In this document: positions 15,792-60,265 of the stretch, one piece after another
How the letters are laid out: each line of letters opens with the position of its first letter
How positions within the stretch are numbered: position 1 is the first letter of the stretch
IMG/VR virus record: IMGVR_UViG_3300021962_000021
Location: 174,220 to 238,219 of that record
Length of the DNA stretch: 64,000 nt
Direction: 5' to 3' (one strand)
Translations under genes and position numbers: made by a program
The notes under the pieces: model-generated
Databases searched by the model: none
The model's input: only the letters and a program-made list of their open reading frames with translations
What the model was told of the DNA's origin: nothing

Positions 15792-17528
15792 ATGGCAGAT
15801 AAATCAATATTTGGTAGGTTACAAAAATTATTTTCAACAAATACCATAATTCGTAAAACACCTGATGGGGTGAAAGTTGTTGATACAGATGAGTATCAAT
15901 CAATGACCACTAACCTCGTTGACCGTTTTATGAAATTAAAGGTAAGTAATTATGCAGGTGGAGTAGAATCGGGATTAGCATATCAACAAGTTCGTATTGA
16001 CCTTTTTAGGGATTACGATTCAATGGATATGGACCCAATTATTTCATCAGCATTGAATGTATATGCGGATGAGTGCACTGCCAGAAATGAATTTGGAAAT
16101 GTTCTTAAAATTCATCACGAAGATGATAACATAAAGCAAATATTAGAAAATCTTTTTTATGATATTCTAAATATAGAACATACCTTATGGATGTGGACAA
16201 GAAATTTAGTTAAATATGGTGATTTCTATTTACAATTAGAAATGGCCGAAGGATTGGGTATTGTAAATGCACTTCCAATGTCTACTTACGAAATGAGTAG
16301 AATTGAAGGTTTCGATCCTGAAAATCCTCAAAGAGTTAAATTTGTATACGCCCCATACCAAAATCCATATAATGCGGTAGGACAAACTGCAAAGAAAGAA
16401 TACGAAAACTATGAAATAGCACACTTTAGATTAAATGGTGATGCAAACTTTTTACCTTACGGAAAATCTATGATTGAAGGTGGTAGAAGAGTTTGGAAAC
16501 AATTATCTTTAATGGAAGATGCTATGTTAATTCATAGAGTAATGAGAGCTCCTGAAAAAAGAATTTTTAAAGTTGATGTTGGTAATATTCCACCAAACGA
16601 AGTGGATAACTATATGCAAAAAATTATCAACGCATCTAAAAAAGTTCCATTTTTGGATGAAAGAACAGGAGAATATAACTTAAAATATAATATCCAAAAC
16701 TTAATCGAAGATTATTATATGCCAGTTCGTGGTAGTGATAATGGAACATCAATAGATACTTTGAAAGGGTTGGAATATAATATGACAGACGATATTAATT
16801 ATCTAAAAGGAAAATTATTAGCCGCATTACAAATTCCAAAGGCTTTCTTAGGATACGAAGAAGATACAAATGGTAAAGCAACTTTGGCCGGCATGGATGT
16901 TCGTTTTGCAAAAACAATTGAAAGAATACAAAGAGTTATTGTTTCGGAATTGACAAAGATTGCAATTGTTCACTTATATGCACAGGGTATAGATGATGAG
17001 AGATTGACAAACTTCAGTTTAGAATTAACCATTCCATCTAAAATATATGAACAAGAAAAAGTTGAGTTATACACTTCAAAAGTAGCATTAATTACTCAAA
17101 TGCAACAAACAAAAATGGTTTCTAAAAAGTGGATGTATGAAACTATTTTAGGAATGGCAAAAGATGAACAAGATGAACAAACTTTAGCTGTATTAGAAGA
17201 TACTAAACAGGCATTTCGTTTAACTTCAATTGAATCACAAGGTGTTGACCCTGCTAAAGAAACTGGTACTGATGGACCAACAAATGTAGAAGAAGAATTA
17301 AATAAATTAAAATCAGAATTAGAGGAAGATGGTGTTGGTAGACCAAAAGACCCTGTTAGATATGGACATGATGACCATCCAGAGGGAAGAGACCCGTTGG
17401 GAATAAAAACTTTAAAAACAAAAGAAGGCTCTGTAAAATACAAACCAAGAAATTCATATTTAGAGATATTTAAAGATATGAATGGTAATAAAAAGACTAT
17501 TTTGACAGAGAATTTGGATAAAAAGTAA
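15792..17528 (+). CDS. gp20: Portal protein (T4 gp20-like)
   Basis: LMEDAMLIHRVMRAPEKRIFKVDVGNIP, EDYYMPVRG, IDTLKG motifs. Confidence 0.95.
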   Translation: MADKSIFGRLQKLFSTNTIIRKTPDGVKVVDTDEYQSMTTNLVDRFMKLKVSNYAGGVESGLAYQQVRIDLFRDYDSMDMDPIISSALNVYADECTARNEFGNVLKIHHEDDNIKQILENLFYDILNIEHTLWMWTRNLVKYGDFYLQLEMAEGLGIVNALPMSTYEMSRIEGFDPENPQRVKFVYAPYQNPYNAVGQTAKKEYENYEIAHFRLNGDANFLPYGKSMIEGGRRVWKQLSLMEDAMLIHRVMRAPEKRIFKVDVGNIPPNEVDNYMQKIINASKKVPFLDERTGEYNLKYNIQNLIEDYYMPVRGSDNGTSIDTLKGLEYNMTDDINYLKGKLLAALQIPKAFLGYEEDTNGKATLAGMDVRFAKTIERIQRVIVSELTKIAIVHLYAQGIDDERLTNFSLELTIPSKIYEQEKVELYTSKVALITQMQQTKMVSKKWMYETILGMAKDEQDEQTLAVLEDTKQAFRLTSIESQGVDPAKETGTDGPTNVEEELNKLKSELEEDGVGRPKDPVRYGHDDHPEGRDPLGIKTLKTKEGSVKYKPRNSYLEIFKDMNGNKKTILTENLDKK

Positions 17529-17554: not shown

Positions 17555-17575
17555 TCTGATAAATAATATCAATTG

Positions 17576-18445
17576 ATGAAAAAAATTAAACATTCGAAAT
17601 TTAAAAATACTGGATTTATTTTTGAATTATTAGTTAGACAAATTACATCAGAAATAATGTCTGCTAATAAATCCGTAGCTGAAAAAATTTTAAAAGAAAA
17701 TTTTAATTCTAAAAAAGAATTATCTAAAGAATTAAAACTATATCAGTATTTAGTTAATGAAAAATATAATTCAGAAACAAAAGCTGAGCAATTTATTAAT
17801 ACAATTTTAGAAGCTAGAAAAAGACTAGATGAAAAAAAGCTTACAAAAGAAAAATACAATTTAATTAAAACAATTAAAGAAACTTATAATTTGGATGAAT
17901 TTATAAAATCACCAATATCAAATTATAAAACATTAGCATCTATATATAAAATTTTTGAAGTAACTATATCAAACGAACAATACGACCCAACTGATATAGT
18001 ATCTGCTAAATTTACAATTGCAGAAAATATCATCAACACTTCAATTCAAAACAAAGATTCTAAAATCAAAGATGCGGTTTTAGAGGAATATAGAAAACAA
18101 GATGAAGATTTAAGAGCAGTATCTTATAAATTATTGGTAGAATCCTTTAATAATAAATACAAAAATCTATCAGCTGACCAAAAGGGTTTATTAAGAGAGT
18201 ATATTAATAACATTAACAATACAGGAAAATTAAATGAATATGTTTCAATTGAAATTTCTAAATTAGTTGATGGTTTAAAAGAGGTAGGTTCTAAAATTTC
18301 AGACAAAGTTACAAAAATTAAATTAGCAGAAACAATTGCAAATGTAAAAAAAGTAAAATCTGTTAAAAAGATAAAAGAACAACATCTATCCGCTTTAATG
18401 ATGACTTACGAACTATTGAATGAATTAAAAGATAAATTAAAATAA
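17576..18445 (+). CDS. Hypothetical head-region protein (helical, Lys/Glu-rich)
   Basis: ATG at 17576 (the track starts at TTG 17573); KHSKFKNTGFIFELL N-terminus; directly follows portal. Confidence 0.7.
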   Translation: MKKIKHSKFKNTGFIFELLVRQITSEIMSANKSVAEKILKENFNSKKELSKELKLYQYLVNEKYNSETKAEQFINTILEARKRLDEKKLTKEKYNLIKTIKETYNLDEFIKSPISNYKTLASIYKIFEVTISNEQYDPTDIVSAKFTIAENIINTSIQNKDSKIKDAVLEEYRKQDEDLRAVSYKLLVESFNNKYKNLSADQKGLLREYINNINNTGKLNEYVSIEISKLVDGLKEVGSKISDKVTKIKLAETIANVKKVKSVKKIKEQHLSALMMTYELLNELKDKLK

Positions 18446-18726: not shown

Positions 18727-19320
18727 ATGCCAGCAGTAAGTAAAGCACAACAAAGATTTATGGGAATGGTTCACGCCGCACAAAAGGGTGAAGAACCTGC
18801 ATCACCTGAAGTTGCAAAAGTAGCAGCAGATATGGATAAAAAATCTGCTAAAGACTTCGCATCAACATCTCATAAAGGATTGCCTGATAAAAAATCAGAA
18901 CAATTAAATAAAATTAAAGAAATCATTCGTAAGATAGTTAGAGAAAGAATGATTGATGAAATGAATGTTACCGGAAATGTTCAAGGATATAATACACCCA
19001 ATGCATTTTCAAAAGGTGATGATAATAAAAAGAAAGCTAAGAAAGCAGCTGATATGGTGGGTTATAGTGTAGTTAATGAAAACCGTTGGTTAGAATTAAA
19101 AAGAGATGAATCAACTGCACAGGCAAAAATTGGTAGAGGCATATCCAACATCAATAGACAATTAAAAGAAATGGAAAGATTTCTTAATTGGTATGGAAAA
19201 ATTAAAAATGAGAGTGGTGTAGATAACAAAAGTTATTGGAAAAGAACTAATAACAATATTTATGCTATAAAGGAAAGATTAATCAAATTAGACCAAAAAA
19301 TCAGACAAATATCAGAATAA
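18727..19320 (+). CDS. Hypothetical head-core protein (DUF3008-like N-terminal module)
   Basis: MPAVSKAQQRFMGMV...AKDFAST.HKGLP; GGAG SD upstream. Confidence 0.65.
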   Translation: MPAVSKAQQRFMGMVHAAQKGEEPASPEVAKVAADMDKKSAKDFASTSHKGLPDKKSEQLNKIKEIIRKIVRERMIDEMNVTGNVQGYNTPNAFSKGDDNKKKAKKAADMVGYSVVNENRWLELKRDESTAQAKIGRGISNINRQLKEMERFLNWYGKIKNESGVDNKSYWKRTNNNIYAIKERLIKLDQKIRQISE

Positions 19321-19321
19321 G

Positions 19322-19627
19322 ATGAATATAAATCAATTAAAAGAACTTATTAAGCAAGTTGTTAAAGAAGAAAGTGATTACCAACAATTGTTCAAACATA
19401 TGTTGGATAAAACTGGTAAATCTATTCCTGATATGAGTGATGCAGAAAAAGTTAAATTTTTCCAAGCTGTTGATAAAGCAGCAAAAGCAAAATCAGAAGG
19501 TAGATTGACAGGTTTGCCTGAAGAATTGAGTGACAAGCAAAAGCAAATTGATGTTGATAAAGATGGAGAAATAGAAGGTTCGGATTTAGCAGCATTAAGA
19601 GCAAAGAACGAAGAAAAAAAAAAGTAA
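19322..19627 (+). CDS. Small head-region protein with EF-hand-like loop, ending at a slippery A10G site
   Basis: DVDKDGEIEGSD matches a DxDxDG Ca-binding loop; ends GAA AAA AAA AAG TAA. Confidence 0.7.
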   Translation: MNINQLKELIKQVVKEESDYQQLFKHMLDKTGKSIPDMSDAEKVKFFQAVDKAAKAKSEGRLTGLPEELSDKQKQIDVDKDGEIEGSDLAALRAKNEEKKK

Positions 19628-19641
19628 ATGAGAACCTTGCT

Positions 19642-20034
19642 TTGGGTATTATAACTACTTTGAGTAGTATAATCATAGGTAAGGTTATATTTTATTATCT
19701 TTATGATTTGACAAAAAAGGGAATAAATTATTTCTCTGGAAAGAAAAATTATAAAGAAGCGGTTAAGAAAATTTTAGATTCAATGTCAAACAACAAAAGT
19801 TTGATATCAGATATATCTAAAATGATAGAAATGAACGGTGAGATTGATAATACAACTGCTAATAAAATTATAAATTTACCATATGTTAGAACACAAATAA
19901 TAAAAATGAGTGATTCTACAAATGGTGAATTAACCGAAACCGAATTAGAAAACGAATTAAAAACAATTCTAATTAAATCGTGGAGTGATTTGGGAAACAA
20001 AGCAGTAGATAAAATAAAAAAAGATTTGAAATAA
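19642..20034 (+). CDS. Hypothetical protein, probably a -1 frameshift extension of 19322..19627
   Basis: TTG start only; the frame is open back through the A-run (K V N E N L A L G I I); hydrophobic N-terminal segment. Confidence 0.55.
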   Translation: MGIITTLSSIIIGKVIFYYLYDLTKKGINYFSGKKNYKEAVKKILDSMSNNKSLISDISKMIEMNGEIDNTTANKIINLPYVRTQIIKMSDSTNGELTETELENELKTILIKSWSDLGNKAVDKIKKDLK

Positions 20035-20625
20035 ATGAATAAGGGATTATTAATAGAAACACACTTATTTGAAGCAAAAATTGTTCAAGAAGAAAATGGA
20101 ACTTATTTAGTTCAAGGTATTCTTCAAAGAGCTGGTGCACCAAATCAAAACCACAGAAGATATCCAAAAGAAATCTTAATGAGAGAGTGTCAAAAATATG
20201 AACAACTCATTAAAGAAAGAAGAGCATTGGGTGAGTTAGACCATCCGGATTCTCCTGTAATCAACCTTAAAAATGTATCACATAACATCAGAGAAATTTG
20301 GTGGGATGGTGATGATGTGATGGGTAAAGTGGAAATTCTTTCAACTCCTTCTGGTAATATTTTAAGAGAATTATTAAAAAACAATATTCGTTTGGGTATA
20401 TCTTCAAGAGGTTTAGGTTCTGTTAAAGAATTGAAAGATGGAACTGTAATGGTTCAGGAAGACTTTGAATTAGTTGGTTGGGATTTTGTTTCTAACCCAT
20501 CTACACATGGAGCATTTATGGCACCAATCAATGAATCCAAACAATGGAAACAAATGGCAGAAGAATGTGGTAAGTGGTGTAAAGCACAAGATTTAATGAG
20601 AGAAATTATAATTGAATTAAATTAA
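20035..20625 (+). CDS. gp21: Prohead core protease (T4 gp21-like)
   Basis: NHRRYP, ALGELDHP, VSHNI, GISSRGLGS, DFVSNPS motifs. Confidence 0.95.
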   Translation: MNKGLLIETHLFEAKIVQEENGTYLVQGILQRAGAPNQNHRRYPKEILMRECQKYEQLIKERRALGELDHPDSPVINLKNVSHNIREIWWDGDDVMGKVEILSTPSGNILRELLKNNIRLGISSRGLGSVKELKDGTVMVQEDFELVGWDFVSNPSTHGAFMAPINESKQWKQMAEECGKWCKAQDLMREIIIELN

Positions 20626-22058: not shown

Positions 22059-23288
22059 ATGGCAAATTCAAAATTATTGAAAGAAGCAATTGCTGATGCT
22101 AAGGCTGTTAAAGAAACTGCTCTTGCAAACGCAAAACTCGCTCTTGAAGAAGCATTTACTCCAAGACTTCAATCTATCTTATCTCAAAAGTTAAGAGCAG
22201 AAGCTGAAGCAGAAGAGAAAGATGCAGAAAAAGTAGACGAGGAATTGGATTCTACAGGCATTGGTTCTTCTACCTCTAATCCTAAATTAGACGCGCATAC
22301 TGAATTCGAAGCGGGTTCTACTAAAACAACATCAGGTGAGCCAGGTGCTCAAGTTGATGATTACAAAAAAGTAGCAGATATCAACGAAGAAGAAGGTATG
22401 GAAATGGGTGATGATGAAGCTGAAAAGCAAAATGAAATCGCTCAATTAAAAGCTAGATTAGCAGAATTAGAAGCAGGTGATGACCAAATGGCTGATGAAG
22501 AACCAAAAATGGAAGCTGATGATGAAATGGGTTCAGATGATGAATTCAATTTTGATTCAGAAGAAGGTGATGGTGAAGAATACGATGTTACCGGTAACGA
22601 AGAAGAAGATACCGAAGATGACATGGATTTAGAAGCTATCATCAGAGAATTAGAAGCACAATTAGGTGAAGAAGAAGATTCAGAAGAAGAAATGCCTGCA
22701 GATGATTCAGCAATGGCTGAAAATTTAGCAGACGGTTCAGAAGCTGGAACTGACAAAGGTGAAGACCCTAAAGTGGTTGTAACTAACGAAGAAGAAGAAA
22801 AAGAAGATGAAAAAGATGAAAAGAATGAAGTAATCGACTTAGAAGAAATTCTTCGTGAAATGGAAGCTGATATGAAAGGTGATGAAGATGAGAAAAAAGA
22901 CGAATCTTTAAAATCTGAATTAAACGAAGCTTACAAGACTATCAAATCTTTACAAAAAACTATTAACGAAGTAAACTTATTAAACGCTAAGTTATTATTC
23001 GCTAATAAATTATTCAGAGCACACAACATGACTAACGAACAAAAAGTTAAAGTGATTGAAACTTTGGATAGAACAAAATCAGTTAGAGAAGTTAAATTGG
23101 TTTACTCTACATTAGTAGAAAACTTCAAATATTCTTCAACTAACAAAGTTGCTAAAAAAGCAATCTCAGAAGGAATCGCTTCTAAAGCAGTTAAATCAAC
23201 TGCACCAAAAGCAGCAGCTAAGCAAGTAATTGCAGAATCTGCAGATTTCGCTGATAGATTTAAAAAATTAGCAGGAATTATTAAGTAA
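22059..23288 (+). CDS. Prohead scaffolding protein (gp22-like)
   Basis: Very acidic coiled-coil protein directly before the major capsid gene; C-terminal RFKKLAGI; strong AAGGAG SD. Confidence 0.85.
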   Translation: MANSKLLKEAIADAKAVKETALANAKLALEEAFTPRLQSILSQKLRAEAEAEEKDAEKVDEELDSTGIGSSTSNPKLDAHTEFEAGSTKTTSGEPGAQVDDYKKVADINEEEGMEMGDDEAEKQNEIAQLKARLAELEAGDDQMADEEPKMEADDEMGSDDEFNFDSEEGDGEEYDVTGNEEEDTEDDMDLEAIIRELEAQLGEEEDSEEEMPADDSAMAENLADGSEAGTDKGEDPKVVVTNEEEEKEDEKDEKNEVIDLEEILREMEADMKGDEDEKKDESLKSELNEAYKTIKSLQKTINEVNLLNAKLLFANKLFRAHNMTNEQKVKVIETLDRTKSVREVKLVYSTLVENFKYSSTNKVAKKAISEGIASKAVKSTAPKAAAKQVIAESADFADRFKKLAGIIK

Positions 23289-23318: not shown

Positions 23319-24935
23319 ATGGATTTAAAACAAATTATGTCAGGCAAAAACCCACAAAACGTAATGCTTGAGCAAACTAGAGGTTTGAAAGCAAAGTGGG
23401 AAAAAACCGGCTTATTAGAAGGAGTAGGTTCTGAAACTTCTAAGCACGGTATGGCTGTAATGCTTGAAAACCAAGCAAAGCAATTACTTGATGAAGCTAC
23501 TAGAACTGGTACTTCAGCAGGTTCAGAAGAGTGGGCAGGTGTAGCTCTTCCATTGGTAAGAAGAATCTTCGGTAGCATCGCTGCAAAAGAATTCGTTTCT
23601 GTTCAACCAATGAACTTACCTTCAGGTCTTATTTTCTATATGGATTTCAAATACGGTACAGCTACATCGGTAGGTAGACCAGCTTCTGGTTCTTCTATGT
23701 TCGGTAACGGTGGTACATTCGGTAAAGATTCTTTATCTCCAGCAGGTAACAAATTGGGTTCTACTCAAACTACTGAAGGCGGTCTTTACGGAGCAGGTAG
23801 ATTTGGATATACAATCAACGATGTAACTTCTGACGCTTTAACAGCAACAGTAACTACAGCTTCTTGGGCTGATGTTAATTTCGATGCTGATTACTCAGCT
23901 TCAGCAGCTGCAGGTGTTATCAGAAAAGTAAAAATTGGTTTACCATCTGATGCTGATTTCAACGCAGTAAGAGCTTTCTCTTTAACTGGTTCAGTTGACC
24001 AATTACCACAATTTACTTCAATTGATTCTTTAGGTTCTGCATCTTTCTTCGTATCAGCTTCTGTAGCAACAGTAGTACATGGTGCAGGTGGATACGGTAA
24101 TCCAAAAGTAAACTATTCTAAGCAACCAACTGATATCACAAGAGGTGATTTCGAAGATAGAGGTTCTGATTTAGCGATTCCTGAAATCGAATTAGAATTG
24201 AAGTCTGAACCAATCGTTGCTAAGACTAGAAAGTTAAAAGCAATCTGGACTCCAGAATTGGCACAAGACTTAAACGCTTACCATTCAGTAGATGCTGAAG
24301 CTGAATTAACTCAAATGTTATCTGAGTATATTTCTTTGGAAATCGACTTAGAAATCTTAGAGATGTTACAGCAAAACGCATTCACAACTGATTATTGGTC
24401 AGCAAGAGTTGGATACGATTACAATGCAGCAGCAGGTGCATTCCAAATCGACTCTAACGCAGCAGCAGCTTCTGCTTACACAAAGAGCACTTGGTATCAA
24501 ACTTTAGGTATTAAATTACAAAAAGTTTCTAACAAGATTCACCAATTAACTATGAGAGGTGGTGCAAACTTCTTAGTTGTATCTCCAAACGTAGCTACAA
24601 TTTTAGAATCTATGAACGGATTCTCTGCAAACCCAGGTAAAGATGCTTTACAATTTGCAGCAGGTGTTACTAATATCGGTTCAATCTCTAACAGATATGA
24701 TGTTTACAAAAACCCATACATGACTGAGAATGTAATCTTATTAGGTTTCAAAGGTTCTAACTTCTTCGAAACAGGTGCTGTATACGCTCCATATGTTCCG
24801 TTGATTATGACTCCATTGGTTTATGACCCAACTAACTTCACTCCAAGAAGAGGTGTTATGACTAGATACGCTAAGAAAATCGTAAGACCAGAGTTCTACG
24901 GTAAGATTGTCGTTGATGGTTTAAACACTTTATAA
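23319..24935 (+). CDS. gp23: Major capsid protein (T4 gp23-like)
   Basis: MLENQ, SVQPMNLPSGLIF, AKTRKLKA.WT.ELAQDL.A.H..DAEAEL, YAPYVPL, GVMTRY. Confidence 0.97.
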   Translation: MDLKQIMSGKNPQNVMLEQTRGLKAKWEKTGLLEGVGSETSKHGMAVMLENQAKQLLDEATRTGTSAGSEEWAGVALPLVRRIFGSIAAKEFVSVQPMNLPSGLIFYMDFKYGTATSVGRPASGSSMFGNGGTFGKDSLSPAGNKLGSTQTTEGGLYGAGRFGYTINDVTSDALTATVTTASWADVNFDADYSASAAAGVIRKVKIGLPSDADFNAVRAFSLTGSVDQLPQFTSIDSLGSASFFVSASVATVVHGAGGYGNPKVNYSKQPTDITRGDFEDRGSDLAIPEIELELKSEPIVAKTRKLKAIWTPELAQDLNAYHSVDAEAELTQMLSEYISLEIDLEILEMLQQNAFTTDYWSARVGYDYNAAAGAFQIDSNAAAASAYTKSTWYQTLGIKLQKVSNKIHQLTMRGGANFLVVSPNVATILESMNGFSANPGKDALQFAAGVTNIGSISNRYDVYKNPYMTENVILLGFKGSNFFETGAVYAPYVPLIMTPLVYDPTNFTPRRGVMTRYAKKIVRPEFYGKIVVDGLNTL

Positions 24936-58129: not shown

Positions 58130-60265
58130 ATGTCAATAAATTTCCAAGAAATCCTAAAAGAGTTAGAATATCGTGTAGATAAAGGTATTATCGACTTAAC
58201 AAATGAGGAACAAGTTACAAAATTAGCACAAATTTTAAAAGAAAATGGAGTTTCTAATCCAATTAAACTTGCAAATGAAGCAAGAGTATATTTCTCATAT
58301 TTAAAAGAAATTGAGGAAGCAAAACCAAAAAAGAAATCTGTAAAAGTTCCTATTGAAAAAATAATGAACCAAACAGTTACAAATACGGATACAAAAAAGA
58401 AAATTAAAGTTAGTTCAGCACTACAATATAAAAATTCAGATAGTGCTGGCCAACAAGCCGCTTATCAACAAGCACAAGCTATGTTTCAACAAGCCGGCTA
58501 TAATGATAATGAGATTGATAAATTAAGCACATCAACAAAACCAGAACCACAACCTGCAACAAAACCAAACGAACCAAACGCATTTGGCGTAAGTGGTGGC
58601 GGACAGCAAGTGTTTGCCGGTGGTAAAGGTAGAAAACCAGAAGAAATTAAACCTGAAATAGATAGAATTAGTATTGAAGCAGGACAGAGTAGACAAGGAT
58701 TTTATAAAAAAGGATATCACAAAGCCGAAGGAGATGATGATTCAGGAGCAGCTCCAGGTAATGCCGGTTCAATGTTAAATGAAAATGGTTCATGTGATGT
58801 GTGTGAATGGGCATTGGAAAATGATAATCAGAATTTAGTAGATGCGGTTGCACATTTATATGGAAATTTAAAAGGTGGGGCATTATTAGAAGCAAGTGAT
58901 AAAACAGGTATAGCTGGACAAGAAAACGCTGTTCCAAGTGTAAACGCTAAACAATTAAGAGAATTTAGAGCGGCGGGCAAAGGTAAGTTTGATAAATTAT
59001 CAGATGGTCAATTATCTAGATTGATGATGGCAGCAAATGGTGGATTGATTAAAGCTAGAAAAATAAAAGAAGGAATAAAGGCAAATAAGTGGAAAGAAGA
59101 AGATTGTGTTGTTAATGGATTTTTTGGTGATGCCGGCGGAAAGGCACAGCAAATGGATATGGTTAGACAATCTAATAGAATATTTGCACCCGATGGTAGA
59201 GAAATACCAAAAGAAATAGCACTTAAATTAGTAGCTGCAGGTGGTGGTGGAGCAAATCCATCGGATACATCTCAATTTGTATATAATCAAAAGACGGGTG
59301 ATTTGATGATTAAATTCACATCCGATAAAGATTCATTTGATGCAATCGTTGCACAATCATCATTTCAAAAAGAAGGTTCTATTAAAAAAGAACAAATAGA
59401 TGAATTGGTGAAAAACGGTAAAATGAAACAAAAAGATGGTGAGGCTTTAAAATCTTTAATAGATAAACAAACTCAAAAATTAAATGCCATCGAATCGGAA
59501 TTGAAAACCGTTGTTGCAGAACCTGCTAAAAAAATGATGACAAAAAATCCTAAAGAATTATATAAACTTGCATTGGAATTTAATACATCATCAAGTGGTA
59601 AAGGTAGATTGGCAGCGATAGCAAAAAAATACGGACAAGGTGGTGACGGAATTAAAAATTTATTAAAAGTTGCCGCAACCGATCCAGAATCATTATCATC
59701 GGGAGATAGAAGAGTTGTTGATGATTTGAAAAAACATTATGGTTTAGATTATTTAGTTGCTGAAAAAATAGATAATATAAGAAAACGTTCAGTTGCGGTA
59801 GAAAGAAAAATGTTGGATGAAATGAATAAAATCAAAATTCCAATATCAGGAGGAAAAGTTGGATTGGGTGATTATATGGATGCTACAAACTTTATTGAAA
59901 AATTCCATATGGCAGGTGCGATGGGTGATAAACATGGTGTATTTGCATATGGTGGTTTATTTGAAGTAGTTTGTGGTGTTGGTGTAATTAATAATGATAT
60001 TATAGCTAGTTGTATGAATACAAACAATATGGATGATTTTATTAGAAAGTTTGGTTCTACAAAAGAAGAATTTCAATTATCAAAAGAAAATCAAATTACA
60101 GGTTCGGTTAGAATTGCATACTTCTTAAACGATAAGGGTGAAAAGATTCGTATTGGAGAAAAAAGACAAAGAAGTAAAACAGGTGCAACTGGAAGATTCA
60201 ATACAGTTTATAAGTGGGATAAAGATACCATAAACTGTTTCAAAAGAAAAAATGGAGTAGCTTAA
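58130..60265 (+). CDS. Large hypothetical protein, possibly capsid-internal
   Basis: 711-aa ORF with a late motif upstream; shares a KKIK...AL module with the 7798 ORF. Confidence 0.6.
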   Translation: MSINFQEILKELEYRVDKGIIDLTNEEQVTKLAQILKENGVSNPIKLANEARVYFSYLKEIEEAKPKKKSVKVPIEKIMNQTVTNTDTKKKIKVSSALQYKNSDSAGQQAAYQQAQAMFQQAGYNDNEIDKLSTSTKPEPQPATKPNEPNAFGVSGGGQQVFAGGKGRKPEEIKPEIDRISIEAGQSRQGFYKKGYHKAEGDDDSGAAPGNAGSMLNENGSCDVCEWALENDNQNLVDAVAHLYGNLKGGALLEASDKTGIAGQENAVPSVNAKQLREFRAAGKGKFDKLSDGQLSRLMMAANGGLIKARKIKEGIKANKWKEEDCVVNGFFGDAGGKAQQMDMVRQSNRIFAPDGREIPKEIALKLVAAGGGGANPSDTSQFVYNQKTGDLMIKFTSDKDSFDAIVAQSSFQKEGSIKKEQIDELVKNGKMKQKDGEALKSLIDKQTQKLNAIESELKTVVAEPAKKMMTKNPKELYKLALEFNTSSSGKGRLAAIAKKYGQGGDGIKNLLKVAATDPESLSSGDRRVVDDLKKHYGLDYLVAEKIDNIRKRSVAVERKMLDEMNKIKIPISGGKVGLGDYMDATNFIEKFHMAGAMGDKHGVFAYGGLFEVVCGVGVINNDIIASCMNTNNMDDFIRKFGSTKEEFQLSKENQITGSVRIAYFLNDKGEKIRIGEKRQRSKTGATGRFNTVYKWDKDTINCFKRKNGVA

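Follow-up and report, generated by a model that had tools for sequence, protein, structure and literature searches.

A conserved slippery A-run, stop codon and RNA hairpin predict a -1 frameshift in a gene of the T4 head-core slot in a large freshwater phage and its relatives

The window that we analyzed is a 64,000-nt stretch, the last 64 kb of a 238,219-bp viral record (IMGVR_UViG_3300021962_000021) that is rated complete, has 31.2% GC and belongs to a large freshwater T4-like phage. It contains a T4-type head module in which a gp20-family portal gene (15792-17528; PF07230, E 2e-68) is followed by four ORFs, two small genes that we call A and B, an S77 prohead protease gene of the T4 gp21 family (20035-20625; PF03420, E 3e-32; phrog_207, E 6e-56), an acidic scaffold-like ORF (22059-23288) and a gp23-family capsid protein gene (23319-24935; PF07068, E 2e-76). 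The features around the junction between A and B, all on the plus strand, are as follows.

19322-19627, plus strand: gene A, zero frame, 101 aa, predicted to be a helical hairpin (residues 3-58) with a flexible tail; the short product.
19550-19600, plus strand: nearly invariant D-V-D-K-D-G-E-I-E-G-S-D-L-A-x-L-R loop in A (residues 77-93), resembling a dockerin/EF-hand Ca-binding loop.
19614-19623, plus strand: run of ten A's.
19618-19624, plus strand: slippery heptamer A_AAA_AAG in the zero frame.
19625-19627, plus strand: zero-frame stop TAA directly after the heptamer, probably a pause element.
19625-19632, plus strand: 8-nt spacer between the heptamer and the hairpin.
19633-19686, plus strand: putative stimulatory RNA hairpin of ~54 nt, with an outer stem pairing 19633-19642 with 19677-19686 and an apical loop at about 19660-19662.
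19624-20034, plus strand: B, the -1-frame continuation, 136 codons plus stop, predicted to form a hydrophobic N-terminal helix followed by a five-helix bundle.
19624-19632, plus strand: junction motif V-N-E in the -1 frame, fitting the hydrophobic-x-Glu pattern cut by T4-type prohead proteases.
19642-19644, plus strand: TTG, the only canonical start available to B in the window, within the 5' arm of the hairpin.
20035-20625, plus strand: S77 prohead protease gene, the presumed processing enzyme, immediately downstream of B.

A first-pass annotation made from the sequence alone had noted that A ends in an A10 run followed by a stop, with the -1 frame open to 20034 and only a TTG start, and all of these sequence statements hold. 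ORF A ends AAC GAA GAA AAA AAA AAG TAA, and the -1 frame is open from 19561 to the stop at 20032-20034, reading V-N-E-N-L-A-L-G-I-I after the run. A slip on the heptamer, or one extra A in the mRNA, would therefore give a 237-aa protein (101 + 136 aa). We first determined whether this arrangement might be due to chance. The genome contains 160 A7 runs, 28 A8 runs, no A9 run and exactly one homopolymer of 10 or more bases, which is this one, whereas Markov models of order 1-6 expect 22 down to 3.4 such runs. Moreover, in ORFs of 150 aa or more, Lys triplets are never written AAA AAA AAR (0 of 24), although AAA represents 82% of Lys codons. The genome therefore avoids slippery runs except here, and the same kind of avoidance is known in E. 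coli (PMC5009743).

Since homopolymers are error-prone, we next tested whether the run might be a sequencing or assembly error. Logan contigs from three independent DNA runs of different samples (run X3, record 10; run X6, record 13; run X2, records 8 and 9) cross it with no gap, and no indel is listed there, although these are contigs rather than raw reads, in which rare length variants would not be seen. In addition, the out-of-frame arrangement is kept in 36-37 diverged loci and about 90 protein clusters (see below), and a selected hairpin makes no sense for switching at the DNA level. The only sign to the contrary is a 1.4-kb contig (locus L101) that has A9, which puts B in the +1 frame, but which keeps the full hairpin (-17.0 kcal/mol) and has an incidental ATG for B; this is either an error or a recent change. 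We therefore consider it very unlikely that the junction is an error, a pseudogene or a phase-variable homopolymer switching the fusion on and off between genomes.

We then asked how widespread this organization might be. A has 281 relatives in IMG/VR, of which 80 were fetched, and is related to 576 protein clusters, while B has 18 loci and 91 clusters; in the databases these relatives are all unnamed or carry spurious names. In contrast, tblastn searches of deposited phage genomes returned nothing for B and only spurious Vibrio phage hits for A. A scripted comparison of all the loci showed that the 36-37 distinct frameshift-type loci, in which B is only 46-90% identical, share a run of 10-12 A's, a TAA or TAG stop 0-1 codon after it and B in the -1 frame, whereas all 23 distinct loci in which A is followed directly by the protease have at most A7. 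Of 36 distinct loci, 29 have A_AAA_AAG plus stop, 5 have A_AAA_AAA AGG plus stop and 2 have A_AAA_AAA plus stop. Runs of 10, 11 and 12 A's preserve the same frame relation because the extra A's belong to the preceding codon, which is always GAA, CAA or AAA, so that the amino acid changes while the two A's are kept. On a tree of the first 93 codons of A, presence of B requires 11 changes, of which at least 5-6 are on well-supported branches, and the long run follows B in 5 of 5 independent pairs. Run X2 even holds a variant lacking B (a joint from 19600 to 20034) beside the form that has B, and in locus L104 the same cassette sits behind a different 70-aa insert in A. The run, the hairpin and B thus behave as one cassette that is gained and lost together.

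Next, we tested whether B might be translated on its own, either from the TTG at 19642 or by coupling or reinitiation after the stop of A. There is no ATG, GTG or TTG in the -1 frame between its upstream stop and the run, and in relatives the first start lies anywhere from +11 to +83 nt after the zero-frame stop, often inside or beyond the conserved hydrophobic helix. The TTG of the window lies within the hairpin stem and is TTA (19644 G>A) in the near-identical strains of runs X3, X6 and X19, which differ at only 7 of about 800 positions. The ATG just after the stop (19628) is in the zero frame and opens only an 8-codon ORF. The peptide K-V-N/D-E-N-L-A-I-G is conserved from the run onward, and the codon-position pattern of substitutions of the -1 frame is already present at +3 to +17. 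Gene callers have given B lengths of 88-154 aa. Although rare relatives do give B its own ATG (L099 with a separate leader, and incidentally L101), independent translation explains neither the unique A-run nor the hairpin, and we consider it very unlikely.

Inspection of the RNA downstream of the run, which the first-pass annotation had not covered, revealed a long imperfect hairpin starting 8 nt after the heptamer (minimum free energy of -21.8 kcal/mol for 19614-19720, z -3.2). In 36 distinct loci, the 66 nt after the stop fold at a mean of -16.6 kcal/mol, when compared to -6.0 for control windows inside B, with a mean z of -3.5 and 29 of 36 below -2. Against synonymous recodings of the same peptide drawn from the genome's codon usage, the native mean is -16.7 versus -7.6 kcal/mol, and 34 of 36 loci have p <= 0.05, showing that the hairpin is selected at the RNA level. 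The outer helix is paired in 91% of cells, against 24-56% when the partner is slid, and has 13 compensatory cells against 5.9 in shuffles, with changes that involve Asn, Leu and Lys synonymous sites and Val/Ile. The inner stems differ in sequence and register between lineages but stay paired, which is why RNAalifold on the MAFFT alignment recovers only the outer helix, with a weak consensus (-2.0 kcal/mol); we therefore relied on per-sequence folding, synonymous-recoding controls and the test of the outer helix. No Rfam family matches at the junction, and the hairpin is not scored as a terminator.

Several relatives provide natural controls. L017, L018 and P0211 encode a single 205-aa ORF in which residues 1-69 of A are joined in frame to B. 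These fusions have no A-run, and the equivalent 66 nt, which encode a similar hydrophobic peptide, do not fold (-6.0 and -6.6 kcal/mol, z +0.8, in L017 and L018). In L099, where B is a separate gene with its own short leader (M-I-K-L-K-S-L-L-I-E-V-M-K-K-K-S) before V-N-E, the run is in frame and the hairpin is weak (-9.8 kcal/mol, z -1.1). No repaired A-B fusion of about 237 aa was found among the 91 B relatives, although the search admitted proteins of up to 275 aa. The hairpin therefore tracks the need to change frame, not the protein sequence, and the fusion protein is evidently a viable and selected product. Hence, the two outcomes named beforehand as contradicting a frameshift were looked for and not found, since contigs from independent runs show A10 and relatives show neither a corrected full-length fusion nor a conserved independent start.

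These comparative findings strongly support the core interpretation of the first-pass annotation, which had proposed a programmed -1 frameshift giving a short protein plus a longer form with a hydrophobic extension, with transcriptional slippage as an alternative. A slippery heptamer, a spacer of 5-9 nt and a downstream structure is the canonical layout of bacterial -1 ribosomal frameshifting, and A_AAA_AAG, the dnaX site, is the most shift-prone heptamer in E. coli (PMC5009743). Among its own tRNAs, the phage encodes tRNA-Lys(UUU) and no tRNA-Lys(CUU), and it is the weak pairing of tRNA-Lys(UUU) with AAG that underlies slippage on A_AAA_AAG (PMC5009743). In our best reading, to which we assign a probability of about 0.85, most ribosomes translating A would stop at TAA (19625) and release the 101-aa protein, while a fraction would slip back one base on the heptamer, promoted by the hairpin and, as we infer, by pausing at the adjacent stop, and would continue to 20034 to make a minor 237-aa A-B fusion. 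RNA polymerase slippage on the run, adding one A, may contribute to the same product.

How much each route contributes is less certain. In favor of transcriptional slippage as the main or only mechanism, the run is at least 10 A's in all 37 loci, longer than a heptamer needs; the codon before the Lys codons keeps its two A's while the amino acid varies between E, Q and K, which points to selection on run length; the variants ending AAA-AGG or AAA-TAA (7 of 36) lack the optimal AAG but keep the run length; the genome purges such runs elsewhere; and bacterial RNA polymerase slips on runs of 9 or more A/T (PMC5009743). The only RNA contig found, from run X19, covers 19636-19836 and thus starts after the run. 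Moreover, no conserved purine-rich Shine-Dalgarno-like stimulator, which is present in dnaX and IS911 but is not universal, was seen by inspection of the 20 nt upstream in the alignment. On the other hand, a downstream hairpin has no known role in polymerase slippage because it is not yet transcribed when the polymerase is on the run, yet it is strongly selected and is lost exactly where no frameshift is needed, which favors a ribosomal component, and 29 of 36 loci keep the optimal A_AAA_AAG followed directly by a stop. A transcriptional contribution is therefore likely, but slippage of the polymerase as the main or only mechanism is a doubtful alternative; within programmed -1 recoding, we put about two-thirds on the ribosomal route being the main one.

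To gain insight into what the proteins might be, we combined sequence searches and structural prediction. Pfam and PHROGs searches returned nothing for B and only a sub-threshold Pfam Dockerin_1 match for A (E 0.0022, 18.6 bits against a cutoff of 22.9), so the EF-hand label of the first-pass annotation amounts to no more than a dockerin/EF-hand-like loop, in which the D-x-D-x-D-G-x-I-x-x-x-D pattern is nearly invariant but AF2 confidence is below 50. The AF2 model of A has a pLDDT of 63, with helices 3-31 and 40-58 at 70-81. B is confidently predicted as all-helical (pLDDT 84.3, pTM 0.78), with a long N-terminal helix as hydrophobic as a membrane span (maximum 19-residue Kyte-Doolittle hydropathy of 2.08). 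It has no known fold relatives, since a PDB profile search, Foldseek against PDB and an ESM Atlas search were uninformative, and the only real BFVD match is a 204-aa uncharacterized phage protein, probably of the fusion type. Some relatives of A carry other in-frame C-terminal extensions of 136-198 aa, so A looks like a carrier for varied cargo.

The position of A and B offers a possible functional context. In T4, where the gene order is 20, 67, 68, 21, the two genes just upstream of protease gene 21 encode the prohead core proteins gp67 (80 aa) and gp68 (141 aa) (PMC9958956), which are separately translated. A and B occupy this slot and have similar sizes, but BLASTP gave no alignment between A and gp67 and only E 1.4 between B and gp68. 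A homologous relationship was therefore rejected, and a head-core role rests on position only. T4-type prohead proteases cut after Glu in hydrophobic-x-Glu motifs and remove N-terminal targeting peptides from internal head proteins. Giant phages such as SPN3US use long cleavable propeptides, of more than 100 residues, in this way (PMC9958956, PMC5694885). The candidate protease site at the junction proposed by the first-pass annotation is V-N-E, V-D-E or I-N-E in all 36 loci, and it also follows the separate leader of L099, although cleavage is only inferred. We propose that A is an abundant core or scaffold-associated protein, to which the frameshift would attach a set minority of B, so that B is carried into the assembling prohead, where the S77 protease would probably release it at V-N/D-E. 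Taken together, our analyses establish the cassette, its conservation, the lack of a start for B, selection on the hairpin and the existence of natural fusions, whereas the production of two proteins and their ratio and the shares of ribosomal and polymerase slippage are inferred, as are prohead targeting and processing by the protease, which rest on position, motif and analogy only.

Comparison with characterized systems highlights what is new. As in the -1 cassettes of E. coli dnaX and the IS3 family (e.g., IS911), there is an A_AAA_AAG heptamer, a short spacer and a downstream stem-loop, and one mRNA would give two products sharing an N terminus (PMC5009743). However, the frameshift would lengthen the protein, whereas in dnaX it shortens it, the zero-frame stop abuts the heptamer, the tract is 10-12 A's, no conserved upstream Shine-Dalgarno-like stimulator was seen and the hairpin lies inside the coding sequence of a hydrophobic helix. 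In the lambda-like tail chaperone G/GT, T7 capsid 10A/10B and the Lactobacillus phage A2 major head protein, a -1 frameshift near the end of an abundant structural or assembly gene yields a minor, C-terminally extended form at a set ratio, and in G/GT the shared part delivers the extension to the assembling structure (PMC10885494). Here, the proteins are unrelated, the slot is that of the prohead core, between the portal region and the protease, and the extension is a complete 136-aa domain that exists elsewhere as a separate gene or in-frame fusion. Transcriptional slippage sites (Thermus dnaX A9, Shigella mxiE, Citrobacter tssM poly-A and endosymbiont poly-A tracts) share a run of 9 or more A's at the junction of two frames (PMC5009743, PMC4256274) but do not depend on a downstream hairpin, which is here the best-supported accessory element. 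In retroviral Gag/Gag-Pol, a -1 frameshift at the end of a structural protein sets the ratio of a fusion that is co-assembled into the particle and cut by the viral protease; with unrelated proteins, this is an analogy of logic only. The mechanism itself is thus known, but in the literature searched we found no report of a frameshift in T4-like head-core genes, which is not proof of absence.

A more speculative possibility, which we regard as tentative, is that the frameshift is a dosing device for loading cargo into a phage head. A would be a general carrier module of the prohead core, to which different C-terminal cargoes are attached; in different relatives the attachment would be in frame, by frameshift or replaced by a short leader. 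The slippage rate would set how many copies of the membrane-like helical protein B enter each prohead before the S77 protease frees it at V-N-E, and B could then be an internal or ejected protein or could anchor the assembling core to the membrane, which would make this a bacterial-virus counterpart of Gag/Gag-Pol.

These findings indicate that the gene should be annotated as a joined frameshift product, since current gene calls in about 90 protein clusters truncate B at arbitrary starts. They also provide a well-controlled recoding site, with an invariant slippery run in a genome that otherwise purges such runs, an RNA hairpin embedded in coding sequence, and sister lineages that solved the same problem by in-frame fusion or by a separate leader and then lost the hairpin. 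On the positional evidence for A and B, they extend the structural slots where phages use frameshifting to the prohead core of T4-like phages, where core proteins may act as carriers that load defined amounts of cargo into heads.

We next looked at the wider context of the proposed frameshift site, starting with the translation genes that the phage carries elsewhere. Outside the window, at genome positions 58753-68700, the phage encodes a tmRNA (58753-59123), the tag of which ends in ...AVAA, and 26 tRNAs, which include tRNA-Lys(UUU) but no tRNA-Lys(CUU). The only other homopolymer of 9 or more bases in the genome, a T9 at 59607, lies just beside them.

Comparison with related sequences revealed several variants of the arrangement in which gene A (the zero-frame ORF) ends in the A-run and is followed by the hairpin and B (the -1-frame continuation). 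In X2, one of the sequencing runs examined, a contig in the same metagenome joins window position 19600 to 20034 with 13 other letters in between, which corresponds to a co-occurring relative that lacks the run, the hairpin, and B. In the related locus L101 (positions 90-230), which is a 1.4-kb JGI contig, an A9 run followed by GG puts B in the +1 frame, while an incidental ATG lies 7 codons upstream of V-N-E-N in B's frame and the hairpin is intact (-17.0 kcal/mol). This is either a homopolymer error or a natural length variant. Finally, some relatives of A carry other in-frame C-terminal extensions (172-198 aa open frames in all), as seen in the related loci L037 (3986-4504), L099 (1908-2504), and L104 (1501-2025). 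In L104, the extension is followed by the same frameshift cassette and B.

Closer inspection of the neighboring genes in the window showed that the 197-aa ORF just upstream of A (18727-19320) has a DUF3008-like N terminus (residues 1-60), with several PHROGs matching at E 1e-20 or better. This part is about 70-74% identical in DNA to genes of many marine cyanomyophages that are annotated as "virion protein" or hypothetical. Further upstream, the ORF at 17573-18445 is listed with a TTG start that is followed at once by ATG (M-M-K-K-I-K...), and the real start is probably the ATG at 17576. Apart from this ORF and B, the conserved genes of the head module on the + strand that were listed in our ORF search start with ATG, which makes a TTG start for B atypical.

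Several small ORFs of the head module, at window positions 19322 (gene A), 20627, and 20881, start with similar amphipathic leaders that end in hydrophobic-x-Glu (M-N-I-N-Q-L-K-E-L-I..., M-A-K-L-V-N-L-I-P-G-R-E..., and M-I-K-L-K-N-I-L-R-E...). The leader of B in L099 (2501-2550), where B is separately encoded, is similar (M-I-K-L-K-S-L-L-I-E). These leaders may be capsid-targeting sequences.
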